From NCBI RefSeq assembly GCF_021028975.2, contig NC_059440.1, forward strand, positions 19,096,001 through 19,160,000: a stretch of 64,000 bases of DNA, written 5' to 3'. A model generated the notes under the pieces. The model ran no database searches and was not told the origin of the DNA. It saw only the letters and a list, made by a program, of their open reading frames with translations. The position numbers and the translations under genes are program-made. Source of the DNA: Sphaerodactylus townsendi. Lineage: Eukaryota. This document shows positions 6,028 through 59,575 of the stretch, in pieces (position 1 is the first letter of the stretch; each line of letters begins with the position of its first letter).

Positions 6028-6150
6028 ATAGAATAGAATAGAATAGAATAGAATAGAATAGAATAGAATAGAATCTTTATTGGCCAAGTGTGATTGGACA
6101 CACAAGGAATTTGTCTCCGGTGCATATGCTCTCAGTGTACATAAAAGAAA
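6028..6150 (-). repeat. (AATAG)n microsatellite attached to a short LINE 3' end
   Basis: About 9 AATAG units followed by TTTATTGGCCAAGTGTGATTGGACACACAAGG. Confidence 0.85.
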
Positions 6151-12047: not shown

Positions 12048-12402
12048 CATAGAATCACAGAATCAAAAAGTTGGAAGAGACCCCAAGGGCCTTCAAGTCC
12101 AACCCCCTGCCATGCAGGGACACACAATCAAAGCACTCCTGACAGATGGCCATCCAGCCTCTCTTAAAAAACCTCCAAAGGAGACTCCACCACCCTCCGA
12201 GGGAGTGCATTCCTCTGTCAAACAGCCCTTACTGTCAGGAAGTTTTTCCTGATGTTGAGGTGGAATCTCTTTTCCTTCACCTTGAACCCATGACTCCTGG
12301 TCCTAGTCTCTGGAGCAGCAGAAAACAAGCTTGCTCCCTCACCAACATGACATCCCTTCCAATATCTAAACATGGCTATCATGTCACCTCTTAACCTTCT
12401 CT
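12048..12402 (-). mobile_element. CR1 LINE 3' fragment
   Basis: [13 protein letters not shown]...RFHLNIRKNFLTVRAV; same family as the 3455 copy. Confidence 0.9.
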
Positions 12403-13888: not shown

Positions 13889-15355
13889 TCACCTGCCCCC
13901 TTTCTCCAGGATCCTTCACCTGCACCATCAGTGGCCGTGACTCTAGGATACGGCTGGACCGCTTCTTCTGGCAGCCACCTGCCCCTCGGAAAGCCAACCT
14001 GCCACTGCCAAGCGCCATCTGTGGACTACATCGGGAGCTGCTCTGCCACAAAGTGCCACGACGGGTGGCACAGCGCTGGGCGAACATCTGGACCACCCCC
14101 ATTTCGGTCTCCTGGAAAGCACTGTGGGAGGGGTGAGCTCTCCACTATGCTGACAACCCAGATGTAACCGGATTGCGATAGATAGAGGCTCTCTGGTGGG
14201 CATCTCTTCATACCAGTGGGCATCTCTTCATCTTTCCTGGTGTCTACTTAGTTTTTATGAATGTGGTTGGATCCAGGCGGGGCTCTTGCCCAGCATTGGC
14301 TGCTAAGTGCCATAAAAATAACATTTTTTTCCCCAGCGGTAGCTGCCTGTAAGTGTTGATTTTATTCTCTTTCTCTCTTCTTTCCCAGTGTATTTGTTAA
14401 ACTATCCATCTTCTCTCCCGCACTTGGGCTTCCTCTGTGTGGTCAGCTCTGCCTCCTAAGACAGACATTTTGTGGTGGCGCCCATGATGTCATCCGAATG
14501 CCAAAGGTGCCGACAAGCTCAAAAGGGTTAGGCTAGGGCACCAGTTACAGCCCCATGCGTGCATGCTAGAGAAGTCAGTTCTCAACAAAGTGACCCGAGG
14601 TCTCTTAGAGTCTCCAATCCTCCTTCCGCAAAAGCTGCTATTTCTCATTGGACGGGGAAAGTTGGAAGCTCAGAAAGGCCTTTGTGATCACCTGGTTCAG
14701 ACAGACGTCAATACCAAAAATACACGGAGCCGTAAGACACCGCGACTCTGAATGCCCGGGCATTCTGCCGTCTTCCACACCCACTTGCTTCTACGGATCA
14801 AATGAAATTAAGGGACAGCCACAGTGTGGAACTATCACTGGGGCTGCAAGAAAAATAACAGGTCTACGCTGATATTTGGAAGACGCCGAAGATGAGCCGA
14901 GAGAGGAACGTGGCGGCCTTGAGACCACGTTCCATCCCAGAATGGAACTGTTGTGCTGACTGCACCACGGAAAGGGTGGCAAAAGCAGGTGCAGAGGATA
15001 CCATGAACCTGATCTCAATACGTTCACCTGCTCCCTTTCTCCGGGATCCTTCACCTGCACCATCAGTGGCCATGACTCTAGGATACGGCTGGACTGCTTC
15101 TTCTGGCAGCCACCTGCCCCTCGGAAAGCCAACCTGCCACTGCCAAGCGCCATCTGGGGACTGCATCGGGAGCTGCTCTGCCACAAAGTGCCACGATGGG
15201 TGGCACAGCGCTGGGGGAACATCTGGACCACCCCCACCCCCATTTCTGTCTCCTGGAAAGCACTGTGGGAGGGGTGAGCTCTCCACTATGCTGACAACCC
15301 AGATCTAACCGGATTGCGATAGACAGAGGCTCTCTGGTGGGCATCTCTTCATACC
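13889..15355 (+). repeat. Local direct duplication of about 330 bp (13889-14214 and 15024-15355)
   Basis: Two highly similar copies 1135 bp apart in PITPNM3 intron 1. Confidence 0.92.
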
Positions 15356-34300: not shown

Positions 34301-37300
34301 ATGTTGTACTAACATCAGGGACAACAGAGATCAAACCTCCCTCTTGTCATGTAGCTCAACTGGACTAATCTTTCTGTCTCTATCTAAAACCAAACTCAAT
34401 TGTGCTTCAAATAAAAACACTCCGTGATCTTGTATAATCTCCAGAACCTCTGCCTGCAATCTTTTTTAATGGAAACAGCACGTTTTGTTTGCTGTTAGAC
34501 AGTGATTTTGGTCAGTGGCTTTTTTTTTTCAACTGGACGCTTCCATTTTGCGCTTCTTCCTCTTAGTGTGCTCAAGGGGTAACCTGACACCAATACTGTT
34601 CTAAATTTGGTAGACCTAGAATTTTACACAGGATGCTTACAAGGCAAAATCTTAGGACAATGGCCTCAGACGTCTTCTTTTCTCCCCACCCACCATCTTT
34701 TTAATATCCCGACTAATTAAAAATTCTGGAGAACGTGAAAGCTTGCATACTGTTCTGTTACTTTGGCCAGACATAATAAAAGGTGTTACACGGTTTTGAT
34801 TTTGGATTTTACTTTGGACCAGCGGGGCTACATCCAACCACATTCTACTCAAAGGGTCGCCATGAAGTGAACAAGGGAGAGGGGATCACGAAAGCCGCCT
34901 TGAGCTTCTTCAAGGAAGGGCGGGTTAAACATTTAACTGTTTTAAATTAGGAGCGTTGCTTTTAACTATTATGAAGTTTTAGTATTTTATTTTGTTATTC
35001 ACTTGCTGTATTATGATGTGAACCGCCCTGAGCCCCCTGGGGGAGGGCAGTATAAAAGTGAAACAAACAAATAAATAAATAAATATTAACATTTCTGAAA
35101 ACACACAATGATCAACACAAGATACAGCTTTTCTGAGCATCTCTCACGTCTGCCCACAATGCTTAAAATAGATGTTTTTGTTTCTAAAAAGCAAGACCCC
35201 TAAAGAATACAGATTTCAGCTGCTTGCATACACACCAATAAAATCTTGTACATCTTCTTCATTGGAAGGGAGAAGTCTTCTAGCTACTGGTGACTTTTTG
35301 GACTCCGGTGGAAAAACTTTCTTCTCTCTGCTTGGCACCCTGGCTCTGCCTGATGGCTGTTCAACCTGAGATGTGGAAGGCCATTTCTTCTCTTTTTGGG
35401 GCGACTCTTTCTTGGACAGCAGAGACTCCAAATCCTGCCACCACAATTTTTGTCTCTCATTAAACATGCAATATGCAAGCACCATTTCCCACTTTGCAAT
35501 TGTCAAAAAGCCTCTTAATTTCCTGCAGCAAAAAAAAGCCTGCACTATATATTCTGTTTGCTACGAGATTTGGGAATAACCCCAGTCAGTTAAGAAGAAG
35601 AGTTTGGATTTATACCCTGCTTTTCTTAGCCACAAGAAGTCTCAAAGCAGCTTACGATTTCCTTTACCTTCCTCTCTCCCAAACAGACACCTTGTGAGCT
35701 AAGGTGGGCCTGAGAGAACTATGACTAGCCCAAGGTCACCCAGGAGGCTTCATATGTAGGAGCGGGGAAACCAACCTGGTTCTCAAGATTAGAGTCTCCT
35801 GCTCTCAAGCACCACACCACTCCGGCTCACCTACTTAAATACTAACATTTGAACAATAGGCCTTTACTAGAGAACGGTAGCAAAAATGCAGGATTTAAAG
35901 AAAATCTTAAAAGAATATTTTCAAAATATTTTTCGGGAAAATATTCTTACTTTGTTACAAAGCCACAAAAGAGTTAATTAAAGCGGGCTTGATGGCGGCA
36001 GCTGCTGTTTGGCTTCCCAATAAGCCCCCCTCTGACGGCTACTACAGAAACTGATCTCCAAGGCTTATCTGTCACCACTAAGGGACATGCAGAGCGGCTC
36101 CCCAGCTTGTTCAGCACTGTCCGTCAAAAGGAAAAAAAGAATCCTTCTCTTTCCTTCTCACCTCTATTTGCAGCAGGATGTCAATGACGACATCAGGAAT
36201 GGAGGAGTCCATCTCCAAGCGAGCAGAGCAGAGGGACAGCTGCCGGATGAGGTTGCCCAGTTCCTTGCAGTGGCCAGGAGCCAGATGGTGCTCCGACTGG
36301 CTGGCCAAGCGAGCGGTGAACATCTGCAAAGCCCGGACTGCGCCTCTGTGAGCTGCTGCCAGCTGGGCCATGGCTCGGGACTGCATCACAAAGGAAGGAG
36401 AGGGGGAGGGTTCTGAGTTAGCTGGATGCTCTCTGGAGGTGCGAAGGAAGAACATTTTTCTCCCTCCATTCTCATCACACTAGAACAGTGGTGGCGAACC
36501 TATGGCACAGGTGCCAGAGGTGGCACTCAGAGCCCTGTCTGTGGGCACACGCAAACAGAGTCGCCCCCACCCCCATACATCTAGGCTGGCCTCAGCCGCT
36601 GGGCTCGATTATTAGCATTAAACCTAAGACAAAGGCCCCTTCCACACATGCAAAATAATGTGTTTTCAAACCACTTTCACAACTGTTTGCAAGTGGATTT
36701 TGCTATTCCGCACAGCTTTAAAGAGCACTGAAAGCAGTTTGAAAGTGCATTATTCTGCATGTGCGGAATGAGCCCTAGTTTTGGGGAAGCAGTGTAGGTA
36801 ACCCTGTTAAGCGCTGTTAAACCCCACTGATTTTCATGTGAAGAACTAAAGCGCAATCCTTTATCTGGGAGTAAGCTCGGTTCTGGCACTGGGGCTTGCT
36901 TCTGTGTAAACCCTCCTAGGGTTGTGATTCACCCGTTGGAAGAGTTGCACGGTTGCTTCAAAGCAAAGCCACCAACTACCACCAAGCTTACTCCTGAGTA
37001 ACGCACGCCTCGGAGCCAACCGTTTTTTTTCTAAACTAAAACCTCAGTATTTAGATTAAATTGCCATGTTGGCACTTTGCGATAAATAAGTGCGTTTTGG
37101 GTTGCAGTTTGGGCACTCGATCTCAAAAAGGTTCGCCATCACTGCACTAGAACATAGGGTCCCTCCCCACTTTTTCTCTCCCCAACTTGGGAAGCTGAAT
37201 ATCATAGAGGGGATGGAGGTTTGGGACTGTAGTCATCATCTATATTAGATGAAGATTTACTGGTGCCGATTGTTGTATTGTTTTATCTTTAGCATAGGCA

Positions 37301-40300
37301 TTTTTATGGGTCATTCGCTGCTCCAAGCCCAACTTTGGTTGGGAGGGAAACGGGGAGAGTAGGGTATAAATTCAATAGAATTCAATAAAGATGAATAAAT
37401 AAATAACTTGTGGAATCTCAGACAGAGGATGCTTCTAGTCTCTGGTAAACTGAAAAGCATGGCAGTTATGGATGACTGCAGAAAACCCCTCATTACTACA
37501 CTGAGAGCTCTTTTCCTGTTTAAGAAGATGCCAACCTCCTGCCCAAGCTCATTCCCTGCTCCCTACTTTCTCAAAATCCTCACAGATTTTTCCCCTCACC
37601 TTTTTTGTGTGTTTGATTTTCTGGGGACTCAGCTTCTCCAGATCTTCCTGAATTTCTCTTACCTATTTAAAAACATACCACAAACAAATTGGCTAAATAG
37701 AGACATTTCTGAGCAGTCTGCGTGGCCGAGTTTGGATCCAAGCAACCCAGTTCTGATATTTGTGACTGTGTGGCTTGTTGTCGCCAAACTATAAGGCTGG
37801 AATAACAAAGTTCAGATCCAGATGAGAACTTCTCTGAAGCCCAAAGAAGCCTCAGTCCGGGCCTGCGCAGAAATCTACACATTTTATGCAATACCACAGA
37901 TAATGTGTTATGTTCTCACTAGCTATTCAGGGTCCACTCTTTTAAAACGTATATTCTGTTCTTGCTGTTCAAAAATTCCTATGCACTTCACAAATCACTA
38001 ACACTCATAACAATAAAGGAAGCAAAATAGCATAAAATACACATCATGTTTAAGCAACACAATAAAACACCTTCTTTATGTAAAAAAAGGTAAGAAAAGC
38101 ATACCAGTTCCAATACACACCAACATGAAAACCACCGCCAAAAAGGAAAGTTGGATACAAATAGTAGTTACAAACAGCCTGCCAGGAAGATAAAACATTC
38201 AGCTAAACACCTAGAAAAACAATAATACTCCCCTCTGTTTTCCCCTGTGGCTAATGTTCAGCAAGCTTGGCCCCAGGTGAATTGCTGAGGAATGGAATTC
38301 CACAGTTGAGGAGCCACCACAGGAAAGGTTCTGTCCCTAAACGCCACTTATCTTGTTTCTGAAAGCGGAGGCACACAGAGTGGGGCCTCTGGAGCTTGCT
38401 TTCCAAAGAAAGGCCACCACTGCCACAAGGTGCTACAAGTCACAATGGAAAAAGAGCAACACTCTTGCCTGTTGTTGCAGCACATACAGCATTCGTGCAG
38501 ATCGCACAGCCTGCTCCTGCCTTCGAACACGGACCCGGCGCTCTTCATCGGGATCCAACGTTTCTTCACTTCTCTCTGGAACAAAAAATGGTTCAGCGAA
38601 CACAGAGGAACGGGTCTGGATTTCAGTCATTAACCTGAGGAAGTCTTACTGCAGAGAACAAGAATGGCTTGTGAGAAAAGCCCTGCTTGGGAGGGAAGGA
38701 TGGAGAAAGTTCTTGCAATGTGCTCACAAGGAGAGTTTCACCATCCTCTGAAAGAAGCATTAAATACTCCCCAGTACCAGTAGAGGGAGACCCTAAGTTC
38801 CGGACCATAGCAAGTGCTACACTTTCAAGGACTAGACAGGAAAAGTCAGAGAACATTGTAAAGTACTCGCTCATTCCAACATGCAAACTGTAAAACATTT
38901 TACGTGACAGCTAAAAAAGACATTTCCAGGATATCTAGGGCTAAAGCACATCAATCTAGATTGCCACTGCTATAACCTTGTAACCTGCCATTCATTTGGT
39001 CTGTCAAACCTCCAAGGAGCAAGCAGACTGCATGCCCAACACAGCATCGCATGCTCCTCCCATCCCAGCCTTAAAAGATCACTGACAACAGCAGCTGCTG
39101 CAATGGATTCTGCCACATGTCTTGGACCCAGAAGCCCCCCATGCCCAGGGAGAAGAACCCCAAGGACACCATTGGCCCTGGAGTTGGGATGAAGGTCTAC
39201 GATTTTGCCACAGCCGAAGCAGAAGCTGTTACCCCTCACCTTTTTTTACCAGCTGTTCTATTTTCTGGATGTAGCTCTGCAGCTCCTTTTGCAGCCGCCG
39301 AACCTCCAGGGCAGTCTTGTCTTCCTCCTTTCTGGGCCCAGGTCCTGGATCACGGGTGGGGGGTGAATCAGACACAGCAGCTTTCAACTTCATCTGATTT
39401 GGGGTGTAGAGATAGACTTTGGCTCCTGAGCTGGTTGTCCCCAGTTTGGACCCATTGCCAAGCTGGCATTCATCTTTCTGGAGGCAATTTGATGCTCTCG
39501 GTCCTACAATGTTTTCAGGCTTCCTCCTGGCTTGCCCAGGCCCCACAGGTTGCAAGGGAGCAGTTTTCTTCTCGCTGAGGAAATGTTGTCTCACTTGCTC
39601 CTCCAGATGTCTGCGTTTCACGTCCCTTTTGGCCAGCTGAACAGCCAAATTGAGCTTCTCTTCGGATATGACAGAAAACTCAACAGAGTTTCGGAAATCC
39701 AGTGCATCGCCGGCACCTTGGTCCTTCCTATTCTGAGGTTGCTTCAGCTTTTCTATTATAATCGGACTAGGGCTGGTGAATTGGAAAGCCAAGTTCCCTG
39801 GCAGCGCAGAAACATTCCGATTGAACTGAAGCTGTTTGAAATAATGAACAACATAAATCTGCCTCTAGGTCATGTTTTTAAGCAGAGCACTCATGCTGGG
39901 GGCGGGGAAAGAAGAAGAGTTTGGATTTATATCCCCCTTTCTCTCCTGTTAAGGAGACTCAAAGGAGCTTACAAACTCCTTTCCCTCCCCCCGCCCCCAG
40001 CAACAAACACCCTGTGAGGTAGGTGGGGCTGAGAGAGCTCCAAAGAACTGTGACAAGCCCAAGGTTACCCAGCTGCCATGTGCTGGAGTGCACAAGCTAA
40101 TCTTGTTCCCCAGATAAACCTCCACAGCTCAAGTGGCAGAGCGGGGAATCAAACCCGGTTCTCCAGATTAGAGTGCACCTGCTCTTAACCACAATACCAC
40201 GCTGGGGACAGGATTGATCCTCAAGGTAAATCAGCAATCCTGACAGATGCCCAGTTAGCTTAGTCTTGAAATTCCTCAAAGGAAGTGACTACAGATGTAT

Positions 40301-41510: not shown

Positions 41511-41661
41511 ATGAGTTGCAACGAGGTGTCAGTGCGGGGTTATGCCGAGTTCGAGCAGACCTGCCTCGAGCAACAGCGGCGGGGGCGGACCGTTTTCGCC
41601 TACTTCAGCGGCGACAAGGATCCCGCGAGTGGCGCCAGTTGGTGCCCGGATTGCGTGAAAG
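41511..41661 (+). CDS. TXNDC17: TXNDC17 exon 1 (WCPDC)
   Basis: Kozak GCCATG; donor AAG|GTGGGT. Confidence 0.95.
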
Positions 41662-44600
41662 GTGGGTGGAATTTGCACGTGTGTATGTATTTACACGTTT
41701 CTGGGCGACTCGGGATTTCTGGTCGGTGACTGATCGGACAGATCTAATACGACCGCTTTCGCTTACTTTAGCGGCGACAAGGATCCCGCGAGTGGCGTCA
41801 TGTAGTTCCCGGATTGCGTAAAGGGTGGGTGTAATTTGTACGTGTGTGTGCTTCCACGTTTCTTGAGTGACTCGATCTTCTGATCGGTGGCTGATCGGAC
41901 AGATCTAATACGGCGACATCCATCTTTTTCGGACGCTTCGTCCCCTCGTGCTATTCTGTCAAGTCTGCAGTCAAACAAGCAGTTGCTTTTTAACCTATTC
42001 CCATCGGAAACGATGCGGGGTTAACATTGTTATCCCTTTTATTCACATAAAATATCTCCAAGCTGATCTGCCAATTAAAACAAGAAACCACATACATCTT
42101 TAAGACATGGGACTGTTGTTTTATATTGCTATTGCAAGCTTAGCAGGAGTACCCATATTGAATTCTTTGCTAGTTGATACTTTACAAGAATGTTGTATAG
42201 TTTATAGGAATAACGTTTATGTGTATGCTGTACTGAACTTGTTGAAATTTAATTCCCAGGAGGATTTGGCACTTATTGTTCTTTAAAATGCTGTAAGAAT
42301 TTTTTTGTTTTGTCCTCATTCAAGTTAACACTTAAGCTTTTAGTATACTTAGTGGTCCGGTGCTTATGATACCATCAACCCACGGAGAGTGATCTGTATA
42401 TTAAAAGGGCTAGTATGGTGTAGTGGTTAAGAGAGGTGGACTATTCTGAAGATCTGGGTTTGATTCTTCACCCCTCCACATGATTGACAGATTTTTGTTT
42501 GGTGAATTGGATTTGTTTCCCAGCTCCTGCATTTCCCAGTTATTTCCCTGGAATTGTTCATGAATGCCCAACATGGTGCTTGTATACAGTAAATATCATT
42601 GAGTTCATAGCAGGGGCCTTATGTGCTATCTAGTCCAGTTCCTTGCCCATTCTAAAAATCCAAAGCATAGTCCTCCCGACAAACGGCTTTCCACCCTCTG
42701 CTTGAAGACCTGGTACAAGGAAGAGCTTGCCCACCACCCTAGATAATTCAACTTGTCAGCAATTCTTCTTTCAGGTACACCTGCTTGGGTTTGCAGCATT
42801 TCTACACACCCATGCTAATTTGACTAGAAAATCAAGGGCTGGGTGATAATTATGTGACTCTTCAGGGTTGGTAATTGAATGTGTGAACAGATTTCATTGC
42901 AAATCACCAAGTTTAAAGTGATACAAGGCAATAGGAAGGTTCTGTGCTTGATCTGTGATGACTCATTCACACATGCATTTTCATCACTTGGTAGCTGCAA
43001 GACTGAGGAATGGCGGGTCGCGTGTGTCAGTGAAGCCTCACAGATCAAGCACAGAAATTCGTTGCTTTATGTTATACCTGGCATAATGCTCTTTAGTGGT
43101 GAGCAAAGGTGGGATAAAAACTGAAGGGGTTTGGCGTCAACCTGAATACTAAATGCTTACTATGTGAACTCACAATAAGATTCTTCCTTTTTTAGCCGAG
43201 CCAATTGTGCGAGCTGAGCTCCTTAACATGCCAGAAGCATCTGTATTCATTTACTGCCAAGTTGGAAACAGAACATAGTAAGTAACACAGTGTGTTAGAG
43301 TCGGCACTCACATTTTTTTGTAACAAACCCAAGGACATTGTGTTGGTTTGAGCTATACTTGGGTTATGGAAATGCAGTTAAGGCCTGCTCCATTCCTTCC
43401 AGGGGAAAAAAATCTTTGGGACGCAAAGCAATTATTTGACCTCACAGTACGTTAACTCTTATAAAGCATGTGTGAACAGTGCCTCTGCAGTCCACAGGCC
43501 AAAGATCTGCTCAAGTGCAGTTACTTTCTGCAACCAACAAGTGACTGTGCTGTAAAATCACCTTGCTGCTGCTCATACTGTTGTGTTTCTTGTGACTTTG
43601 ATCTCTGCTGGATGGCTGCTTTTATCTGCTGGACTTCCATCCCTTTGAAGCATTAGTTTGACATCTCGCTGATTTAGCATGAATCCTCACATTTTAAAAA
43701 ACGCATACAGGCTCCGAGTTATAGCCAAGGGCTACTTCACAGGCGCCAGACTGCGGGTGCACATTTCAACATCTTAGGTGTACACCTGAAGTGTGATTAC
43801 AACGATTCTGCAGACATATCTGCATGTTGGGAAGCTGGGATTGGCTGCAACTACTTCTTGGGTGAATCCTCAGACTACTTCCTTTTGCATATGTGCATTT
43901 CCCCTCCCTGGGTTGGAATGCTTGTCCATGCACTTTTGCCTAACTTATTTTAATTTTATGTATCTATCACATTATCCTGCCCTTTCTCCAGGGGACTTAG
44001 GGAAGACCATCACTCTCCCCTCCCACATTCCACCTCACAACAACCCTGTAAAAGAAGCTAGGCTGAGTGTATGGGACTGTCCCAGTTAGTTTCATGGGTT
44101 CAGTAAGGATTCAAACTGAAGTCTTCCAGATCCTAGTCTGACATTTTAACAACTACAACATGTGAAATGAATGGCAGGCTTAAAAAAAATGTTCCCATCT
44201 CAAAACTAAAAATATGATTGCCCTGTTGGATGAGATCAGATGTGGACCATTTAAGCCAAATACTTCTTTCTCCCAGTGGCCAATCAACTACTCTTGGTTG
44301 AGCTACCAAGTAGGACTTAGTGGTGGATGCCATCCTGCGCTGGGTATATGGGACAGTGTACTCCCTATCACAGTAATAGGTTTTCATTTCCTAGTTATCA
44401 CACTTAATGGTTGCAGACATAGCCTTCGTACGTTAATTATCCTTTCTAAATGCACTTAGATTGATCCGAGAAAATTTCTCCACAGCTGGAAAGATCCAAA
44501 CAACGAATTCAGAAAGAAGCTTAAACTCACTGGTGTGCCTACATTGCTTAAATACGGAACTGTAAGTATTTTTTAGTGTACAGCTGAATTCTGGCTTGAG

Positions 44601-45204
44601 ACGCACATTATCTGGCCGAGGTGCCTTATCTTCTGAAGTGTTGCTCTTTCTGCAAAACTCTGCTATGAATGTACAGCCTTCTTCTGTGCATGTCACTTGG
44701 AAGTCTATAGGACCAAGTTAGTTTATAGTGTTTCATATACTTGGGTGTCAGCCCCTCTCAAGCATTGTCCCTTATTTCTGAGTAAAATGCATAGGCTCAT
44801 GCTAGAAGTCTCTTGCTTTCTGGTACTTGTAGCTAGTGAAAATTTACTAATTTATTGTGGCACCCTTGGGAATTTTCTGTGACACAAAAGAAAACCTGTG
44901 GCATACCTCACATTTGGCCTTTGCTCTTCTGTACTCAGTGACCTTTGCACCAGTTGGGGAAATATTTGTAATTTACAACCTTTGAACAGTGAGCTACTTT
45001 CTCCCATGAGGCATGCAGAGCAAACTTGTCAATATGAAATTCAAGCCGCATCACTATTAAAATGCCTGTTAGTAACAATCAGCATATTTTGTAGGGGGTT
45101 ATTAACTTCTGTACCAATTTTAATTCCTGTTTCAGCCTCAGAAGTTGGTGGAAGACGAATGCTTTAAATCCGACCTTGTGCGTATGCTGTTCACAGAAGA
45201 CTGA
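41511..45204 (+). CDS. TXNDC17: Thioredoxin domain-containing protein 17 (TRP14), 4 exons, 125 aa
   Basis: Exons 41511-41661, 43196-43277, 44486-44561, 45136-45204; WCPDC active site; [37 protein letters not shown]; all introns GT-AG. Confidence 0.97.
41751..41911 (+). pseudogene. Degenerate tandem duplicate of the TXNDC17 exon 1 3' half plus donor site
   Basis: Copy of 41588-41750; reads [21 protein letters not shown] (W to TAG, C to F) and keeps AAGG|GTGGGT. Confidence 0.85.
43196..43277 (+). CDS. TXNDC17: TXNDC17 exon 2
   Basis: [26 protein letters not shown]; AG acceptor, GTAAGT donor. Confidence 0.95.
44486..44561 (+). CDS. TXNDC17: TXNDC17 exon 3
   Basis: [25 protein letters not shown]. 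Confidence 0.95.
45136..45204 (+). CDS. TXNDC17: TXNDC17 exon 4
   Basis: [22 protein letters not shown]; AATAAA at 45380-45385. Confidence 0.95.
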   Translation, partial: PQKLVEDECFKSDLVRMLFTED

Positions 45205-45728: not shown

Positions 45729-46989
45729 GATACAAGTATTTAGTGCTAAATTAACCCCAAACCCTTCCCAGTACCAACAGAATTTTCTCCCCAACAAATT
45801 GCAGGGATGCTGGCGCTCTGCCTTTTGATACTTCAAGCCCAGTTACAAATACTGAATCACTTTGTAGTAATCACAAAAGCAAAGGAATTTTAAATCGTGT
45901 AGAGAAATGCTGAATAGAACTTTCTAGGACTGAATCAGATTAAATGTCTGTGAATTATTATTCAGCATCATCCATATACATGGTCCATTATAGACCTTAT
46001 TAAGCTGCTCTTAAGCTTCCGCTGGAAGACATTTAAACGCAGACAGGAAACCGGGATACATAACGTTCTGACCATTAAGAGCAAGGTTGAAGGTAAACAG
46101 TGAAGAAACAGGGGGCTTAAGGTGGCTTCATCATTATATAAAATAAGATATCTGTCACTTTGCTCTTCAAAAAAAACCCCAGAAACTTGAGAAAGGCTTT
46201 AATTTATTTAAATCATCAGCCACGTCATGAAAAAACCAACCACTGGTAAGTTGCTTATCTCTGGCTGCTTGGGTGTTCACTCAACATTAGCACATCTGCT
46301 TTCCTTTCACATTTATATTGCATCAAGCAGGGGCCCTCCCTGCAAAGAAACTGGTTTAGGCAGAAAATTATTCAAGCTGCCAAAATGGCACCAGGAAACA
46401 GCATTTCTGACTAAGTTAGTTCACAAACTGAAGTTCTGTAAGGGGGAAAGCATGGGAAAGAGACTGCACATAGTTTCTTCTTGACTATCCCATGACCATT
46501 TTCCCCCTGTGAATCTGACAGATCAACAAGAGACATTTCTGAAGCCAGGACGTTCAATCCAGCTGGATCTCAGAACTGTTTTGAGTACAATATCAGTGTG
46601 CGTTACAGGAAGATGTACCCCAAAGTAGACCTCTTTATTTTCCTATGGATTTAATAATGCAAAGCCAGTAAGTTTTCCCAGTTGTGATCTACCACCACTA
46701 ACAAAATAAGCATATTGAAAAAACCTGTAAAAGCCGTCTCTGCTTCAAAAAATCACATTCCTTCTCCACCCCCTTCTGCTGTACCATTCTGCTATACCAT
46801 TTTAAATAGCTACGGTCTAAGCACCTTTTGTAACTGCACCTTATATACATAGATCGAAGCCAGCAGTCCAGACTCTATTAAGCTGACGAGCTCCTGTCGG
46901 CTGCCTTTCCCTGATGTAGCAGGAAGTGGAAGGGAAACCACCTGTCCATGGAAAAGAATCCAGCCTGCTTTTGTAACCAGCCAAGGGGC

Positions 46990-47185
46990 TCATTTGATGG
47001 AGGCACTATTCTGTTGCTGCTGCTGGTCCGCCAGGGCCTGCTGAAGGCGCATCCGCTTGCGGGAATAGTGCTGCCAGTGGAGAATCTGCTGCTCATCAAT
47101 GAACTTGGCACACTGGGCATTCACCAGTTCTTTCCGGAAGTGTTCGTACTGGAGCAGCTCCAGCATGTGTAAACATTGAGGGTAC
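46990..47185 (-). CDS. MED31: MED31 exon 4
   Basis: YPQCLHMLELLQYEHFRKELVNAQCAKFIDEQQILHWQHYSRKR...SIK*. Confidence 0.96.
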
Positions 47186-50061
47186 CTTATGGACAAAAAC
47201 AGTTGACACATGAGTCTTATAGGGAATATTTTAGCACCCCTATTACCACCACCTTGCAAGACTATTATCTGATTTTAATTCATGGATTTACTGAATATGC
47301 AAAAAGATCCACACAACCCAAAAAACCCACAACAACCAGTTGAATCCAGCTGTGAAAGCCTTTGACAATATACCAATGTAAATATTTATTTCAAGACGAA
47401 CTGAACATAAAAAAACCCTTTAACTGATTTTCCCCTACCCTGCATCTAGGCCAGAATCCACAGATGGTATTAGTCTTATGTATAAACACGAGAAAGGCTG
47501 CTGCTGCTTTTCGTGTTGTTGCGTCTGTTAAAGTGGGAGGGGGTCACATACATGTACACTGCACACTGCTATGCAACTTGGCAGACAGGCAAAATGGAAA
47601 ATCGCAGGCTAAAATCTTTAGTCTAAAAGCAGATAAACAGAGAGCTATTACCAGCCGAAAGGGACCATACTGAGCTATACTGAATGAGCACCTGATTTCA
47701 CACAAGGCAGATTCATGTGTTCACATGTTCAGGCATTACCCCACATAAAAAACAAGCACACACAATCCGGCCACTTGGAAAACTACCACTTGTGAGCAAG
47801 CAAAATTAGAATCTCTAATATTAACCAACACAGTTTTAGAAGCGCTGTCTCCTAGCTTTCCCTAAATGCAGAGATCAATTCTGGACCATTTAACATTGTG
47901 TGAGATACATAAATCACTCTTACTTTAAGTATTTGGCATATTCTGGTTCCTTCCAGTACAGCAGGTACTTTATATAGTTCACAAATGCTTTGTCTTTGAA
48001 GTATCCTCTCTGGGCAAGAACTGAAATACACAAAGCAAATTATTTTAGAATGGGCTTAACCTACAGTTGGGTAGCAAGCTTTCCCTTTTTACAAGAACTC
48101 AGGGGTCTTTAAGTGCATGGACAATAGACTCAAGACATACAAAAGTATTTTTACCATAAGATATGGTTACAACTTCAGCAGACCAATCATTCATAAAATT
48201 CAAATCAGGCACTTCTCCTTGTAAAATGTTAAATATTCTTCATTTATATACACATATGTAAGTGCTGACTAGTTGCAACCAATTTATGGCAAGTCCAGCA
48301 AAGTGCTTTCAAAGCAAGTGAGAGACAGAGATGGTCTGCCTTCTTCCTTAGCTTGATCTTGTTATCTGAGCAGTTCCCATCCAAGTCCCAACCCTGCTCA
48401 GCTAACAAGATCAAGCTACACAACACCACCTTTACACCAGTCCTTTACCATACCCCAGTATCTTTAGAAAGCCCTTTTAGAATCCCCTTGATGATTGGGT
48501 ACACCTTCTTTCTTTTGTAATGCATTTTCACATTTGGGTTGTTATCACCCTTGGCCACTGATGGCAACTTAGTGGTCAATACATCAATAGTGCAGCTGCA
48601 TTTGTTTCCAGCACTTACAGTTTAGGTAATTGGGGTTTGCGAGGCACTGCACAAATTCCAGCTCCAGCTGGAACCGAACTCGGTTTCCTGCATCATCTGG
48701 TGTCAGAAGGAGAAAGAAATGTTAAAATCATACAAGGAGGACAATTCTAGGCTCAACGACACAGTTTTGCTCAGTGTATAATCCACTGGAAACAGAGCTG
48801 TGGAAGGGCTAAAGCAAAATAGTTGCAGCATTTCTTTAACACCCAGAATGTCCCAGGTTCAATCCAATTATCTTTAACCAAAGAGACTCAAAGAGCAAAT
48901 GCTGGGAATGGCCTTACTCTGCCTGAAACATCAACCAAACACTGCCAATCAAAGTAGGCAATACAAAACTAGCAGGAGTAGTGCTCTAACTTGCTACAAA
49001 GCAACATACCAGGCATTCACAAGGTTTGAAGTCCAATCTTTGGTCCATTTAATGACAAGAAGGAACGACAATCTCAAGTCAAGGGATCATGTTAAAAGGA
49101 TAATCAAACAAATCCTGGCACAGGTTTGAGCTTCTCATCCTCCTTTACTTCTGAAAGCTGAGATTGCTAAGAACTTCCCAGCCAAGTGATAGAGCAAATG
49201 GGTGAACGTATGAAAAGCTACACAACTTCACAGCCCAGAAAGGTTTCCTAATGTCAAACTGAATTTGACATTCAGGAGGAGTGTGTTTCTTATTTTTAAG
49301 GGGGGGGGGGGGCACGCAGAGTCCCAAAAATCAAGGAGCTGCTAGCGACTGGCAGTGGTTTTTGGACCCCCTCCAATTGGGATAGTCAATTCTGGTGACA
49401 GCCCTTCCCTCCTGTTATGCTACAGGGTGAATCTAAGCAGAACTACGTTCTTCTGCGCTCATGCTGTCAATGGCCTCCACTTAGGACTGCGCTGTTCAAA
49501 CTCCTGATGCTGCATGCCCCAGTCAAATGCTTGAGGAAACCCACATGGCAGCCAGAGGGCATCCCTGGGGCACAGTACACATTCTGCAAACCAAGTCCTA
49601 TTCATAGTGACAAGAGGGTTAAGAGATTTCGGAGAGCTGCTAACTATCAGAGCAGACAACGCCAAATCAACCAGTGTTCTAGTTGAGGCTCGAATTGTAA
49701 TGAAAAGCAAACAACCAACTAAAGAACTGGCAGCTGTGACATCAAGAATAGTAGTAGTGGCAGTAGTACTATAAAACCTGCGTTGCTTTGAATGCCAACC
49801 CTTCATCAACTGAAGGACTGGCTTACATAACTCCTCACGCATCTAATGACCTGGTCTGTGGCCCACAGAACTCTCTGCCACTAGAGGAACCGCAACAAAA
49901 CCCACTTGGAAATTCCTCGCATTCAAAATTGGGGTGATTCCTCCTCATATTCCCTTCTTCCTCACATTCCCAGACCCTCGGGCCCCGCGCGGACCACCCA
50001 ACACCACATCCTCGGCATCTCCCAAACACCCACCCGTCTCCATGGCGCCGACGCCCGCCAT
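46990..50061 (-). CDS. MED31: Mediator subunit 31, 4 exons, 132 aa
   Basis: Exons 50034-50061, 48619-48696, 47924-48020, 46990-47185; MAGVGAMETDDAGNRVRFQLELEFVQCLANPNYLNFLAQRGYFKDKAF...HWQHYSRKRMRLQQ. Confidence 0.98.
47924..48020 (-). CDS. MED31: MED31 exon 3
   Basis: LAQRGYFKDKAFVNYIKYLLYWKEPEYAKYL. Confidence 0.96.
48619..48696 (-). CDS. MED31: MED31 exon 2
   Basis: DAGNRVRFQLELEFVQCLANPNYLN. Confidence 0.96.
50034..50061 (-). CDS. MED31: MED31 exon 1
   Basis: MAGVGAMET, 28 nt, phase 1. Confidence 0.9.
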
Positions 50062-50280
50062 CCGCTTCCCCGGCGAGGGAAAAATGGAGACAGCAGCTGC
50101 GCACTTGAAGCCGAACGCGGTGCATTCTGGGAAGCCTCCTGTTCCGGCTGCGAGGAGGGGAGGCGGCTGTGTTGCTGTTGCCAGGGCAACGAGGATGCTT
50201 CGTGGCTTGCTGGAGGGCCCTAAGCATCCCTCGACACACCTTTCCAACAGTGGTCCAACAACCACGTCATATTACTTGGT
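50062..50280. promoter_or_regulatory. MED31 promoter, probably bidirectional; ZNF143 site (50121-50133) and RFX X-box GTTGCCAGGGCAAC (50177-50190)
   Basis: CpG-rich; TTCCCAGAATGCA on the minus strand; near-perfect palindromic X-box. Confidence 0.75.
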
Positions 50281-52304: not shown

Positions 52305-52475
52305 ATGGCAACCCAGTTTTTAAAGGAAATTGAGAATGCAGATGATAAGAAACCTTCAGAAATGAGGACTCTGGTGATTAAATGGATAGAGAAGCTTTTT
52401 CCTGATGTTCAGTCAGTCGCAACAGAAACCCTGCAACAGTGGATAGAAGAAAAACCGGAGAAGCTTCTGATTCTT
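52305..52475 (+). CDS. Rhodanese-like gene coding exon A
   Basis: Open frame with phase-0 GTAAGT donor; continues into DTR at 58067 to make the LLILDTR motif. Confidence 0.75.
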
Positions 52476-55400
52476 GTAAGTGCATCCCTTCTACTATTTC
52501 ATAGCCCAAAATAGGGCCCACTAGTTCTTGTACCACAGACTGGAATCCCTTTCCTCCAATCCTCGGAGGAAGGATCTCCTCCCACCAGCTGTACATAGTA
52601 TTAATTTACTGTGCAGTCACCTCTCTTCCACTAATTTAAAATCCAGAAATGTGTTTGTTCTTGTTAAAGATATACTAGAGAAATGTTAAAAGTCCCATAA
52701 TAGATAATCAGTGTTTCAAAATATATCTTGGCAGCAGGGTATCAAATGGCAGATTGCACACTGCCTTTGTATTCGTGTGCGTATGTTTGTATGCTAAAGT
52801 GTTAAGAGGCAAGCTGTACCTTGCTCCCCACTCTGTGATTTAGCTTCTAGAGACTTTGGGTGAGGATTTGCACCCTGAAGAATGGTGACTCCAGCAATTC
52901 ACACATAACATTTTTAACAAGTCCTCCCCCACCCCTGGACTGCAAGGATTTACCAGGGAAACACACCCAACAAAAGGTAGCAGCTGTTTTTTCAGGCAAA
53001 TAAAGATCCTTCCCAACACCTGGAAATGCCCAAGACTGAACCTGGGATTTTTAAAATGCAAAGAAAATACATGTTCCTTGCAAAGCTAGGAAGTTTGGAA
53101 AGTAACTATGAACTTCTTCCATTGCCACTGGTCAATTTCATCTATTGCCACTGGTCAATTTCGAAACAGTACAAGAATATTTAAAACCGCCTTTCTCACT
53201 TTCTTCTCACACACACACCCGTTGGAAGAGGGGCACATGCAGTGGTGGGATTCAAATAATTTAACAACTGGTTCTGGTGGTGGGATTCAAATAATTTAAC
53301 AACCGGTTGTTTACAAGCACCATTATAACAACCGGTTCTGCCGAAGTGGTGCGAACCGGCTGAATCCCACCACTGGGCACACGGGGAGATAGTCTATATG
53401 CAGCACTGGGCAGCTCCATTGTAGAGGGGCACTCTGCTTACAATGTAAAACAACAGAGGCATAACAAATCCCACTTTGGGTTGGCACTGTGCTGTGTTGA
53501 AAATGGATGCCTTCATGCTACAAGCCTCAATGCATGGAAATGACTTGACACATCAAGGATTTAAAATAGCCACCTCTGATGGTCAATCGCTTGGAGAAAA
53601 AAAATGACCTGTCCCTTTTAACAAAGGCTGAATGGGTTGTTATGTATCTGTGTTCCACTAAAGGCTTCAAGCAACCCATTTCCACACACTAAGCCTCTCT
53701 TCGTGGAGCAGAACAGTTTTTTTTCATGCCTGTTGGCAACCTTACCCATCACTTAGGTTTGATTCAGTCAGAAATGGCTTCAGAACACAATATTACAGAT
53801 TCTACAAAATATTGTTTCCAGTCAATCAGACCGTTAAGGAGGCTCATTCTGCCAAGCGAGGAGCTTTCTCTGCTCACCTCTAAAGCGATACGAGCGGACT
53901 GGAGAGGGCAGTCAAGGCCTGAAAACAGAGTCACGGCAAGAAAATGTGATGCATTAAACTATGTGGAGAAGTCTTTTTTTCCCCCTGTAGGCAGATCCAG
54001 ATCACTGCTTACTCACTACCAAGATTCTCCTTGTAGACAGGGGACCACAACCATCTCTGCTTGCAAGATTCTGCTGACCATTCCTGAGTTGCATTATTTC
54101 TAAAACTGCCATCCATACAGTAGCCTAGAAAAGACCATGTAGTCACTGTTTTGCTATTTTTTAGTCACTGTTCTGCTATTTTCAGACAGTGAAATATTGT
54201 AAGTGACTGAGCAAAGCTCTATAATCTAACCCATCCCAGCTAAACATAGGAGCTTTTCCCCCTCTCCCTTAGGAACTTAGTTCTAAAAAATCCCAAGAAA
54301 GTCTCATTCTTAGCTTTTGTTAACATAAGAAAGTCTCTCTTTGCCCAGAAGGCTTTTTTTTAAAAAAGTGGTTAAGAAACCATCATTACTAAAATGAACA
54401 GACCAAAATTCCTGCCCAGTAAATACAGCTCCTGGGCTAAAAGAAGAGGCCTCACCAAACCGCAAACTCACTTTCTGTGCTGGCAACTTTACGGGATAGG
54501 GTGAAGCTAAACTGCAGGTTGGTTTGCCAAAATAAACGTCAGCATCTCTATTTCTGGGCACCAAAAGGGGAGCAATTAAAAAAGAAAAAGAAAAAGGGAG
54601 ATAAAGTTAGGCTCAAAGGAAGATTTAGGGAAAAAATGTGGCGTAGGAGGTTAAGAGCTCGTGTATCTAATTTGGAGGAACTGGGTTTGATTCCCAGCTC
54701 TGCCGCCTGAGCTGTGGAGGCTTATCTGGGGAATTCAGATTAGCCTGTGCACTCCAACACACACCAGCTGGGTGACCTTGGGCTAGTCACAGCTTCTCGG
54801 AGCTCTCTCAGCCCCACCTACCTCACAGGGTGTTTGTTGTGAGGGGGGAAGGGCAAGGAGATTGTAAGGGCAAGGAGATTGTTGAGTCTCCTGCAGGAGA
54901 GAAAGGGGGGATATAAATCCAAACTCCTCCTCCTCCTCCTCCTCCTCCTCCTCTTCTTCTTCTTCTTCTTCTTCTTCTTCTTCTTCTTCTTCTTCTTCAT
55001 TTGACTGTATAGGGCTGAGAAGGTCCTAACTGTGGTGGATTCCACACAGCGTACGTATAACAGGTTGCAGTCATTATAAAGGAACCCGTTTTCCCTTTCC
55101 CATTTGCATGTATGCACGACGTTGCTTCTCTTATTTTTTAAATTTCCTGCAACACATGCGTAGCTGCGCAGGCATACAGAAATGAACCCCCGCAGCCATG
55201 CCGATTGACCCACAATCTGATCGGCTGCACCTGCCGAGCTGCACATGTGCAACACGCAAAAGAAAACAAAAAGGGACCTCTTTGCAGTGGCTGGGGAATA
55301 ATGAACATGTCACTGTAGATCGGTCATACCTGCTGCCACGGGGAGAAAATATGCTTGGGAGACTGTGTACACTGTCGGGCTCTCAGAGAATCTGCCCACA

Positions 55401-58400
55401 ATATGCTGGGTGACCTGCACAGAATGGTGGGCGGGTGGATTCTCCCTGACAATTAAGAACATAAGAACATAAGAACAAGCCAGCTGGATCAGACCAGAGT
55501 CCATCTAGTCCAGCTCTCTGCTACTCGCAGTGGCCCACCAGGTGCCTTTGGGAGCTCACATGCAGGATGGGAAAGCAATGGCCTTCTGCGGCTGTTGCTC
55601 CCGATCACCTGGTCTGTTAAGGCATTTGCAATCTCAGATCAAGCAGGATCAAGATTGGTAGCCATAAATCGACTTCTCCTCCATCAATCTGTCCAAGCCC
55701 CTTTTAAAGCTATCCAGGTTAGTGGCCATCACCACCTCCTGTGGCAGCATATTCCAAACACCAATCACATGTTGCGTGAAGAAGTGTTTCCTTTTATTAG
55801 TTCTAATTCTTCCCCCCAGCATTTTCAATGTATGCCCCCTGGTTCTAGATATGAAATTAGATATGAAACATCTGAAAGTAGATATGAAACATCTGAAAGT
55901 AAACATATATCTTCATGAGCCATGTTTGCTCATGGTCATTTTTTGTCATTTTATTTTGCCTGCCAAAGAGCTCTGTGAAATGGGGAAGCTTGCAAGTCCA
56001 GTGAAAAGGGCCATTATGCTTTTGGGACCAACAGGGCCAGCAACGTCTACTAAAATAAAACTGTGTTCTTTCTGGCCCCTTCTGTTCTTTTTGGACTCAC
56101 GTGAGCAGGAGAGACCAAGACATGATGGAGCTTAGACAGTGAACTTTGGCTCTAACAAGGCCAAGCAAGATATTTTAGGCTCAGCCCTTGTTGCCTTAGA
56201 GCTGTGGCCAGCGAAACTTTCCATTTTTGGATGCTGACACAACCACAGTGTGGGTATTTTAAGTCTCAACTTTTAAATAACTTTGCCCAATTAGCAAGTC
56301 TAATTTGTGTAGTGGACACTTCCAACAGCTAGCAGTGAAGTCTGTGGTTGAGGGAGGCCTTCCCCTTTGAGGATCCATTGGGACAAGTTTTCCAACACCA
56401 ACAGACCAGGGTGTTTTCATTCAAGAGGTTTAAAATGGCTCTTGTGTCCATCAGTGCACGAGGCAACAGCAAAGCCCACGTTGATCAGCTAGCTCATCTG
56501 AATTACAAACACACCTTCCCTTTGTGTTCCAATCCATCTGCCTCAATCCATCTGGGACCTGTATGACTAACGGCAACTTCTGCCTCAATCCATCTGCCTC
56601 AAAAGCGATAAAATTCTATCTCATCCATTGACTCCGCAATGCATCATTCAGCCTTTCCTCAAAGGGTTTGCAAGTCGAGTTTGGAGGACCTTTAGGCACC
56701 AGCGGCTTTTTCCGAATCGGCTAGAAGTCTTCAAAGCAATTCCCTGGCAGTTGTCAGTCAGAATTTGTGCATGCTCAAGGATACCTCGTTCGCAATGCAG
56801 CTGGATCAAAAGGGTGTGCATTATACGTTATTTATAACAAGCCAGCAAAGCAGGCTACAATTTCCAAACTCTTGCTCTGTCATTAAAGTTCGATGGCAGC
56901 CAGATCAAAGGCATGCATTAAGGACTGAAACAAAGCAAAGAATGGGCTTAATTAGAGGTTGGGGTGGTCACTCCTGTTCTGTTTTGGTGGCCAGGCAACC
57001 AGCAGGTGATACTCTACAAGGTCCAGAGAAGTTCCCTTGGGAGAAAGTTTCTGGCTGGTCCTTCATGTCTTCAAGGAGTTTACAACATCTCTGCAGCTCA
57101 CATTCAGAACACACAACTAACTTTCACATCAGTCATTCAGCAGCTGTAGGGAATGTTGCTTTCAAAGCATGCAGGAGCTGACTTCACTCCAAACAGAGGC
57201 TGGGGTGGCAGGCTGCTTGCCCATGTTTTCTTCCTGATTGAAACTGCCCCAGTGAAGGTTTATTTGCATACCTTTGGCACTGTATGAGGTGTATTCCAGT
57301 GTTACTAATCATGGTGACTAATGGCAACTTCTACACCATTGCTACATCTGGGGATAGCCTTGGCTTCTTCGCAGTTTATTAGCCATTGGTAACTGGTCGG
57401 TGACTGTGTGAAACAGGATGTTGGACTGGGTGGACCTCTGCTTTTATATATATATATATATATTGATTACCGCCCACTGCACATCTTTCTGGATCTACCA
57501 AAGGAAAACAATCCATGACTAAGACAAGCAGTGGCACAAGATGCTCTATTTGCTCGACAAGTGGTCCAGCCTAGCCCAGTGGCCTCTTTCTTTCCTCCTT
57601 GTCTTGTGGGCTTGTCAGGCTACTAGAAAGTTAAAGCTTTATGCATTTTGGTAGGAGACTGGGGAAGAATAACAGCATACCGGTTTAGGGTTGTCAGTCG
57701 GCCTTGAGAAGAATGTCCCCTGCCTTTAATAAAGACTGAAGATGTAGAAAAGGGCAGGTGAAGCATGGAGTGAAATGATTTCACCCAGTAAATAACATTC
57801 CTCTGTTATAGGGACAACAACAATGACCTGGAGGAACCGAGCTAGCTTGATCTTGTCAGATCTTGGACACTAAGCTAGGTTGGTCCCGGCTGGTACGTGG
57901 ATGGGAGACCGGCCAAGGAATGCAGGGGTTGCTACAAAGAGGCAGCCAATGGCAAACCACCTCTGTTAGCCTTAGGTCTTGAAAACCCTACTGGGAGGGG
58001 CAAAGGCTAGGAGCCCATATCCAAACTGAGATCAGCTCAACTTTTTTATCCCTTTGCTCTCCTTAGGACACTCGAACCGCAGCTGAGTTTGAGGTTAGCC
58101 ACCTGCCTGGAGCGATGCTTGTCGCATGACTTTAGGAAAGTTCACAGACTACTCGCGAAAGAGGCTTCTTTGAAGAAGGCATAGCCTAAGGAGAGGTACA
58201 GCAGAACTGGCTCTGGGGAGCATTTCTCTGGCTCGTGAAGGAGCCCCCAAGATGTGCCAAGGCTGGCTGGAGTTGCGTGGACCTTTTTGTCGCCTCTGGG
58301 ACTACCCGCCCCAACAGTCAGGAGAGCTCAATGAGTTTCCCCCACAAATCATGCTCCAAGTAAACACCAAGGGGTAGCCAGCAGCGCCACCGTGAAGTGG

Positions 58401-59575
58401 GGAGGAGTGGTAGTCAGAAAAAGGGTCTGGTTTATGGAAGTAAGAGCTACCTGATTGGTCAGTTTATCCACGCAGCAGGGCTGCTGACCCTCAAAAGCTC
58501 CTTTCATTGTAAATCAGTTCATCTCACAGTATCCCTGCCTTTCTCCCGCTCTTCCAATATTATAAAGAACAGTTATTTCTGTGGAGTGTGATTGCTTTGC
58601 CAGTGCTAGCTGTTTTCTTTATTTTCACAAGTGCCTTGTGAGGTAGGCTAGTGTCAGGATGTGTTTTCTCCTTCCATCAAAGGAATGCTCTCAGGTGAAG
58701 ACATTCACACCTACTCCGGGATGGGGCTCTCCTCTCTTATGTTAATGGACCTTTCTCTTCCTTTTGTTTCCTTTGATGCTGCCTTGGGGGATGCTTGCCT
58801 CCCCAAAGGTTCTCTTCTTTCTCTGGGTTTTTCTTACATTCCATGGGAAGAGGGAGGGGGAGGATTTATGGTTACTGCATGGGGATAAAGACAGGAGCAA
58901 TTGCAAGTGTGGTCAGAACTGGCTTTAGCAAAGCCAGGTACGTGCTGTTGTTTCCAATAAAGGCTTCTGATCGAGAATCCAAAGTCCGTTATTGACTTCA
59001 GTCATAGAACCTGACAACTAGGCTGTGAGAGGGGGAACGGAGCATATCTCAGTCCATCAAGGCAGAGTAAGGATTTTATCTGACCTACACTGTGGCAATT
59101 TTTCCCTTGCAGCGTTTTCTTCTTTCTTAGTGTGGCATAGTGGACTCCAATCTATGCTAAATAGCATAGATTAGCAGTGGACTCTAATCTATGCTAAATA
59201 TCGTACAAATCCACAATTCAATTGTAGCACCCTATTCCACAGTGACTTGGCATTTATCCTCCCTATCAAACCATTCTATGTTTCTTTTCCATTTCAGAGC
59301 ACAACGGGGGTCCCAGATTCATTGTCTGCTACTGCACCGTAGGCTACCGGTCTTCCATTGCGGCTCAGCTTGTGAATGAGATCTTGCCTCAATTGACCGC
59401 TCAGAAGTCAGCAGCCTCTTTAGATGTCTACAACGTCCAAGGTGGACTAGTGAAGTGGGCCACAGAGAAGAGGCAGATGGTCAACCATCAGGAGACCCCT
59501 ACTCAGGTGGTCCATCCCTACAGCCCCATCTGGTCGAAGCTCTTGGAACCAGAGTTCAAGGCAGAAGTCTGCTGA
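52305..59575 (+). CDS. Unnamed single-domain rhodanese / sulfurtransferase-like gene (3 coding exons); exon 2 disrupted in this sequence (pseudogene or assembly error)
   Basis: Exon A 52305-52475 (MATQF...WIEKLFPDVQSVATETLQQWIEEKPEKLLIL|GTAAGT); exon B from 58067 (DTRTAAEFEVSHLPGAMLV, then TGA at 58127); exon C 59298-59575 (IVCYCTVGYRSSIAA...VYNVQGGLVKWA...VHPYSPIWSKLL). These are the canonical rhodanese motifs ILDxR, E(F/Y)xxxHIPGA, YCxxGxRS and L/VxGGxxxW. Confidence 0.8.
53240..53375. mobile_element. Small hAT MITE
   Basis: TIR CAGTGGTGGGATTCA/TGAATCCCACCACTG; TSD GGCACATG/GGCACACG; internal tandem duplication of the left end. Confidence 0.88.
54924..54998 (+). repeat. (CTC)n(TTC)n microsatellite grown from a SINE tail
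   Basis: Directly follows ATAAATCCAAA of the SINE at 54635. Confidence 0.9.
55453..55847 (-). mobile_element. CR1 LINE 3' fragment
   Basis: RTRGHTLKMLGGRIRTNKRKHFFTQHVIGVWNMLP peptide; near-identical to the 9575 copy. Confidence 0.9.
57845..57992 (+). mobile_element. 5S rRNA-derived SINE with Sauria/BovB tail
   Basis: GATCTTGTCAGATCTTGG..CTAAGC..GGATGGGAGACC (5S A and C boxes), then GCCAATGGCAAACCACCTCTG...CTTGAAAACCCTA. Confidence 0.75.
58067..58195 (+). pseudogene. Rhodanese-like gene exon B with in-frame stop and frame incompatibility
   Basis: Strong acceptor CCTTAG; SHLPGA motif; stops in all three frames after 58127; 129 nt to GAG|GTACAG, whereas a phase 0 to 1 exon needs 3n+1. Confidence 0.65.
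58652..59016 (+). mobile_element. Solo LTR (Gypsy/ERV-like)
   Basis: TGTCAGG...CCTGACA terminal inverted repeats, 5-bp TSD GCTAG/ACTAG, AATAAA at 58956-58961; splits a SINE remnant. Confidence 0.75.
59298..59575 (+). CDS. Rhodanese-like gene exon C with catalytic Cys loop CTVGYR
   Basis: Intact frame from acceptor TTTCAG to TGA; Cys codon at 59333-59335. Confidence 0.85.

Follow-up and report, generated by a model that had tools for sequence, protein, structure and literature searches.

A disrupted copy of the MED31-linked single-domain rhodanese gene in the genome assembly of the gecko Sphaerodactylus townsendi

Background

Rhodanese domains such as those of Escherichia coli GlpE, PspE and YgaP, of BH2092 (3nhv) and of the Francisella protein 6mxv have a common fold, in which a Cys after the central strand opens a CxxGxR/S loop. 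A loop of six residues marks sulfur-transferring rhodaneses rather than Cdc25-type phosphatases. A further bacterial subfamily, itself of unknown function, is described by the NCBIfam model NF045521 ('rhoda_near_glyco'). The gene considered here is located in a stretch of 64,000 nucleotides (nt) from the gecko Sphaerodactylus townsendi (contig NC_059440.1, positions 19,096,001 to 19,160,000, forward strand), which was analysed as a whole and is called the window in the following; coordinates refer to it unless another locus is named. An initial annotation, made from the sequence alone, had described three spliceable segments that rebuild an unnamed single-domain rhodanese of bacterial type next to MED31. 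The three segments, their coordinates and the motifs quoted for them are all present on the plus strand. Two of the segments proved to be intact exons of an old animal gene, while the middle one is disrupted, and the window copy as assembled encodes no rhodanese enzyme.

The animal proteins related to the window copy share the fold and the loop with the GlpE group at about 20% identity, and the two N-terminal helices and the HPY..W tail of the animal family are missing from that group. Among the curated families, NF045521 scored best. Full-length animal orthologues reached 77-92 bits (1e-22 to 3e-26), with alignments that cover almost all 144 profile positions and include the C-terminal tail, and exon 3 of the window copy gave 50.4 bits (2e-13). 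The curated cut-off of 145 bits was not attained, and the animal proteins differ by about 30 extra N-terminal residues and by the introns in their genes. Judged by these scores, they are relatives of NF045521 and not members. The proposal that the N-terminal helices and the VHPY..W tail are common to a bacterial subfamily agrees with this best NCBIfam match.

For TrhO/YceA, the rhodanese domains of MOCS3/Uba4/MoeB and Rhd_2599 of Allochromatium vinosum, from which automatic names of the animal proteins derive, only the generic rhodanese domain is in common. Animal orthologues obtained 24-44 bits with the TrhO model NF001133 (cut-off 170) and 21-37 bits with the MoeB and MoeZ models (cut-offs 449-647). 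Neither the UPF0176 N-terminal domain nor a ThiF/E1 domain was detected in them by Pfam. With such low scores and no second domain, the automatic names are unfounded and misleading. Nothing on the animal gene was retrieved by literature searches that addressed the animal family, a rhodanese at MED31/TXNDC17, or Rhd_2599.

Results

Disruption of exon 2

The features of the window copy are compiled in Table 1. Exon 1 is intact, its protein sequence is 89% identical to that of Gekko kuhli exon 1, and it is followed by a GTAAGT donor at 52476, a hexamer identical in four lizards. Exon 2 is preceded by an AG acceptor, after which DTRTAAEFEVSHLPGA is read in phase 0, so that the LLIL/DTR junction is clean. 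Its 5' part shows 50 of 60 nt identical to Gekko kuhli, a degree of conservation also seen among the other geckos. Right after ...HLPGAMLVA, the frame set by exon 1 runs into a TGA (58127-58129), which is followed by a TAG (58133-58135) and a TAA (58187-58189). Over the whole exon (58067-58195), all three forward frames are closed.

The disrupted exon comprises 129 nt, while the five other sauropsids compared (Gekko kuhli, Paroedura, Eublepharis, Podarcis and emu) share its acceptor and donor but have an open exon 2 of 109 nt. Its 3' half can be aligned to Gekko kuhli and Podarcis only with insertions of 14, 5 and 1 nt (20 nt longer), and 12-14 of 49 aligned nt are identical to the other sequences, compared to 43 of 49 among the other three geckos. 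No possible source of the inserted sequence was detected on either strand in the rest of the window or in the orthologous loci. In the window, exon 2 starts and ends in phase 0, but the first codon of exon 3 has to be completed by one base from the preceding exon. Due to the length of 129 nt and this phase mismatch, the three segments cannot be spliced into one open frame, and no uninterrupted frame leads from the N-terminal half to the active-site half. The initial annotation is therefore correct regarding exons 1 and 3, but not regarding a fold rebuilt from all three segments. The exons of the neighbouring genes TXNDC17 and MED31 are intact in the same window, which is therefore not generally degraded.

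Exon 3 is intact as well, with a protein sequence 84% identical to that of Gekko kuhli. Its acceptor AG (59296-59297) is part of a CAGAG tandem, and the frame reads ...FIVCYCTVGYRSS...VYNVQGGLVKW...VHPYSPIWSKLL...AEVC before the stop. The codon for the catalytic Cys is found at 59333-59335, at the beginning of a C-T-V-G-Y-R-S loop encoded at 59333-59353. This is the six-residue CxxGxR/S loop starting with Cys and not the seven-residue loop of phosphatases. At the C-terminus (59564-59575), one extra codon is present, since the frame ends ...AEVC-stop instead of ...AEI-stop as in the four other lizards and geckos compared. The sequence GTC TGC TGA looks like a 3-nt duplication that added a C-terminal Cys.

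Table 1. Features of the window copy of the rhodanese gene and of neighbouring genes
Feature	Position	Strand	Description
Exon 1	52305..52475	+	ATG, 57 codons; two N-terminal helices and start of strand beta-1 (...LLIL); includes WIEKLFPDV
Intron 1	52476..58066	+
Exon 2, intact 5' part	58067..58126	+	DTRTAAEFEVSHLPGAMLVA; end of beta-1, helix, beta-2 with conserved D.R...E...SH motif
Exon 2, disrupted 3' part	58127..58195	+	three in-frame stops; conserved GTACAG donor at 58196
Intron 2	58196..59297	+	holds 42-nt open stretch 58316-58357 between AG and GT
Exon 3	59298..59575	+	two bases of split codon, then HNGGPRFIVCYCTVGYRSS...VHPYSPIWSKLLEPEFKAEVC; TGA at 59573-59575
MED31	46987..50135	-	coding exons ~47002-47202, 47920-48027, 48614-48712; all open (tblastx against Podarcis and emu loci)
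TXNDC17 (TRP14)	41511..45203	+	exons ~41511-41666, 43195-43278, 44484-44570, 45127-45203; all open
KIAA0753/moonraker, two large exons	36111-36455, 39229-39792	-	PF15718, 2e-51 and 4e-34

Two further observations concern the introns. The Gekko kuhli model KAL8198681 (225 amino acids, flagged UNVERIFIED_CONTAM) includes an additional exon, about 41 amino acids long (14217-14348 of its locus), that is absent from every other orthologue. Its counterpart in the window, 54386-54517, lies in intron 1 and contains stops, and the extra exon is most likely an annotation artefact within intron 1. In intron 2, a core of about 37 nt (58316-58352, CTCAGGAGAGCTCAATGAGTTTC.CCCACAAATCATG) is nearly invariant in three geckos. 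It is single-copy and has no match at blastn level in the Podarcis or emu loci. An unusual conservation of the intron block after exon 2, suggested by the three-way alignment, was dropped from consideration, because by blastn the block is 72-74% identical, as are the remaining introns, and single-copy.

Selection on the intact exon parts

The intact parts of the window copy were compared to those of Gekko kuhli, yielding a synonymous divergence (dS) of 0.48 and a ratio of nonsynonymous to synonymous divergence (dN/dS, omega) of 0.13. Changes private to the window lineage were 19 synonymous and 14 nonsynonymous ones, corresponding to an omega of 0.21 with an upper 95% bound of about 0.4, and neutrality on this lineage was rejected (P=1e-5). 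The same count for the other three geckos gave values from 0.19 to 0.33, and the window lineage is no higher. By this measure, constraint on exon 1, the 5' part of exon 2 and exon 3 is not relaxed. Undiminished constraint suggests that the lesion is either very young relative to the long window lineage or absent from the animal.

Orthologues and descent of the gene

Orthologues were gathered by an exhaustive HMMER search with exon 3, by cluster look-ups and by two word searches, with the exons queried separately. While the word search with exon 3 alone returned a single Logan fragment, the exhaustive search reached the orthologues. Among lizards and geckos, these were found in Gekko kuhli, Eublepharis, Paroedura, Podarcis and Pogona, and among other sauropsids in snakes, turtles, a crocodile, emu, ostrich and a tinamou. 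Platypus, a caecilian, coelacanth and many sharks and rays have the gene, as do amphioxus, molluscs, corals, a flatworm, an annelid, a brachiopod and a nemertean. The 120 best-scoring hits of the profile search, which covered annotated proteins of the searched set, included no therian, neognath, teleost or frog proteins.

The assumption that the gene had escaped recognition was thus not confirmed, since dozens of vertebrate and invertebrate genomes already contain predicted orthologues with automatic names. These names contradict each other and include tRNA uridine(34) hydroxylase-like, MOCS3-like, sulfurtransferase Alvin_2599, GlpE-like and mere LOC numbers. The first of them is attached to LOC144325649 of Podarcis muralis and CAI5795163 of P. 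lilfordi. Further predictions are LOC143824607 (Eublepharis macularius and Paroedura picta), the Gekko kuhli model mentioned above, LOC112986833 (emu) and LOC100681627 (platypus). What does hold is the existence of an uncharacterised single-domain rhodanese gene divergent from MED31, at the level of a family. Similarly, a loss in mammals is compatible with the failure to find a therian protein, but the platypus copy is a mammalian orthologue and limits this claim.

The predicted vertebrate orthologues resemble the window copy in their three-exon structure and phases, their place between MED31 and SLC13A5, a CYCTVGYRSS loop and a VHPYSP.W tail. They differ from it by the open 109-nt exon 2. In other reptiles, three coding exons specify proteins of about 180-188 residues. 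The gene order is TXNDC17(+), MED31(-), rhodanese(+), SLC13A5(-) in Podarcis and Eublepharis, TXNDC17, MED31, rhodanese in emu, and MED31(-), rhodanese(+) in Gekko kuhli. In the window, the rhodanese gene is also on the plus strand and head-to-head with MED31, as had been proposed, and it starts 2.2 kb past the first exon of MED31. Position and orientation, exon phases and closest similarity all place the window copy in the vertebrate MED31-linked group. On these grounds, the locus is regarded as the orthologue of an ancient animal single-domain rhodanese gene between MED31 and SLC13A5.

In a maximum-likelihood tree, one branch separated all animal sequences from the rest (92/87), the vertebrates formed one clade (100/97), and the branching order followed that of the species tree. 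From this branching, the gene is judged to be old and vertically inherited. The term 'bacterial-type' is consequently appropriate for the nearest relatives of the gene, but does not describe its origin. The elephant shark Callorhinchus milii harbors three paralogues (164, 166 and 165 amino acids) around MED31 (964-14389 of the locus), with an SLC13 gene adjoining. Two or three paralogues each were observed in sharks and rays, indicating expansion of the gene in cartilaginous fishes. The copy of amphioxus is not linked to MED31; neither this gene nor TXNDC17 adjoins it.

Predicted fold and activity

In Pfam searches, the pieces of the window copy scored singly below the gathering score of the Rhodanese family (PF00581, 22.2 bits), with 17.1 bits for the 5' part of exon 2 (profile positions 18-36) and 18.5 bits for exon 3. 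Intact full-length orthologues obtained 45-65 bits, and Rhodanese was the sole Pfam domain found in them. Sequence and profile searches of the PDB yielded nothing close. An AlphaFold2 model was considered for the orthologue of Eublepharis, not for the window copy. It has a predicted local distance difference test score (pLDDT) of 92 and a predicted template modelling score (pTM) of 0.88 and displays the alpha/beta rhodanese fold, with two N-terminal helices, the rhodanese core and a short C-terminal helix. The top PDB matches of this model in Foldseek were all rhodanese or Cdc25 domains at about 20% identity.

Across 46 sequences, the D.R...E motif, the Y-C and G-Y of the loop C-[ST]-V-G-Y-R, a G, a W and the H of the tail H-P-Y...W are invariant, and the R of the loop is invariant or nearly so. 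Considering fold and loop, the protein specified by intact copies would be a cytosolic sulfurtransferase. A persulfide on the Cys of C-T-V-G-Y-R would donate its sulfane sulfur to a thiol or another thiophilic acceptor, and the H-P-Y...W tail and the two N-terminal helices would pack on the domain.

Neighbouring genes in the window

The exons of KIAA0753, TXNDC17 and MED31 (Table 1) fix the synteny block of the window. The window is vertebrate DNA and the counterpart of the block KIAA0753-TXNDC17-MED31-rhodanese. The first exon of MED31 was placed near 50036-50135, inside a G+C-rich stretch. A partial second copy of TXNDC17 exon 1 was noticed on the plus strand at 41737-41835, about 70 nt downstream of the true exon (41571-41666). 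It carries an in-frame stop where the active-site motif WCPDC is expected and looks like a small tandem duplication, a dead pseudo-exon left in intron 1 of TXNDC17. Runs of N are located at 1218-1355 (138 bases) and 3972-4227 (256 bases).

Discussion

The break in exon 2 is read here, with a probability of roughly 0.55, as a real and recent loss-of-function allele, possibly still polymorphic, in the orthologue of an ancient animal rhodanese gene. According to this interpretation, the 3' half of exon 2, which specifies the helix between strand beta-2 and the active-site strand, would have been replaced or scrambled. Since the conserved splice sites are kept, the mRNA would contain a stop after 77 codons, 69 nt upstream of the last exon junction. 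The product would be at most a fragment lacking the active-site half and the catalytic Cys, and the transcript would probably be a target of nonsense-mediated decay. As exons 1 and 3 and the 5' part of exon 2 are without relaxed constraint, the lesion would be young compared to the age of the lineage. It would be one further loss, next to the absence of the gene from the searched proteomes of therians, neognaths, teleosts and frogs. More tentatively, and at slightly less than even odds, the gene may have been lost repeatedly from the conserved MED31-SLC13A5 interval, the window showing another independent loss that was caught before the remainder of the gene decays.

Several points weigh against a real loss. 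The lesion rests on one assembly. Purifying selection appears as strong as in geckos with intact genes, and the same picture would be expected if a functional gene had been misassembled. The damage is restricted to about 70 nt, and a single complex event would explain this just as well as a single local misassembly. Moreover, the sulfurtransferase activity of the family is itself predicted from fold and loop.

The gene could therefore be intact and functional in the species, with the scrambled 3' half of exon 2 stemming from a local error of assembly or gap filling or from a rare haplotype that the assembly captured. The omega of the window lineage, the preservation of every splice site and of all three intact exon parts, the limited extent of the damage and the runs of N elsewhere in the window would all be in line with such an explanation. 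However, the lesion is not an indel of the homopolymer type, but consists of about 50 nt unlike the orthologous 30 nt and brings three stops. The sequence on both sides is collinear with that of the orthologues, no run of N or repeat is present at the site, the exons of TXNDC17 and MED31 are clean, and there is also the extra codon at the C-terminus. Taken together, an artefact or rare haplotype is considered less likely than a real lesion, but a serious alternative. Far less probable is a rescue by splicing, in which an early donor in exon 2 would be joined to a new micro-exon of 42 nt (58316-58357, SGELNEFPPQIMLQ) and this to the second AG of the exon 3 acceptor (59298-59299), which would restore the frame. 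This stretch of 42 nt is open and flanked by a CAG acceptor and a GTAAAC donor, both without counterpart in Gekko kuhli and Eublepharis, the tandem acceptor of exon 3 provides the second AG, and the constraint on exon 3 would be accounted for. Yet the sole GT ahead of the first stop (CTT/GTCGCA, 58120/58121) is a very poor donor. The likeness of the stretch to the missing helix is within chance and does not stand out among 202 open intronic segments, and the same intron sequence occurs in geckos with intact exon 2. The micro-exon was rejected for these reasons.

Two other explanations concern the origin and the role of the gene. That the best NCBIfam match is a bacterial subfamily, and that the VHPY..W tail is common to environmental sequences, could point to bacterial contamination or to a recent horizontal transfer of a bacterial rhodanese. 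The spliceosomal introns with conserved GT-AG sites and phases, the conserved vertebrate synteny and the grouping of the animal sequences in the order of the species tree contradict such a scenario; exon structure and synteny had already refuted it, and its probability is negligible. The initial annotation had also considered an intact, unannotated vertebrate sulfurtransferase, lost in mammals, that acts together with its neighbour TXNDC17/TRP14. TRP14 reportedly reduces persulfides, and TXNDC17 is situated 7-11 kb upstream of the rhodanese gene in the window as well as in Podarcis, Eublepharis and emu. On the other hand, the window copy is broken, predictions of the gene exist for many genomes, and a copy is known from platypus. 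Around the three Callorhinchus paralogues, the gene calls in the retrieved flanks did not include TXNDC17, and the unlinked amphioxus copy speaks against a partnership as well. Nothing beyond synteny connects the two genes, and this explanation as a whole is quite improbable. Therians presumably keep TXNDC17 beside MED31 without a rhodanese gene, and in view of this arrangement the proximity is interpreted as inherited gene order.

Conclusions

The significance of the window alone is modest, as it contains a disrupted copy of a known kind of gene predicted elsewhere. A real and recent loss-of-function allele is the favoured interpretation of this copy. For annotation, the names referring to TrhO, MOCS3 and Alvin_2599 are unfounded, and one exon of the Gekko kuhli model is most likely spurious. 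A possible reason why the family has remained unstudied, to which we would give a little less than an even chance, is that the protein searches performed here detected no copy in therians, neognath birds, teleosts or frogs. If the family is an active sulfurtransferase, it would constitute an extra branch of animal persulfide metabolism that is apparently absent from the usual model vertebrates. Its patchy retention in sharks, coelacanth, a caecilian, reptiles, ratites, a tinamou, platypus and marine invertebrates would then be a natural experiment on the dispensability of the enzyme.

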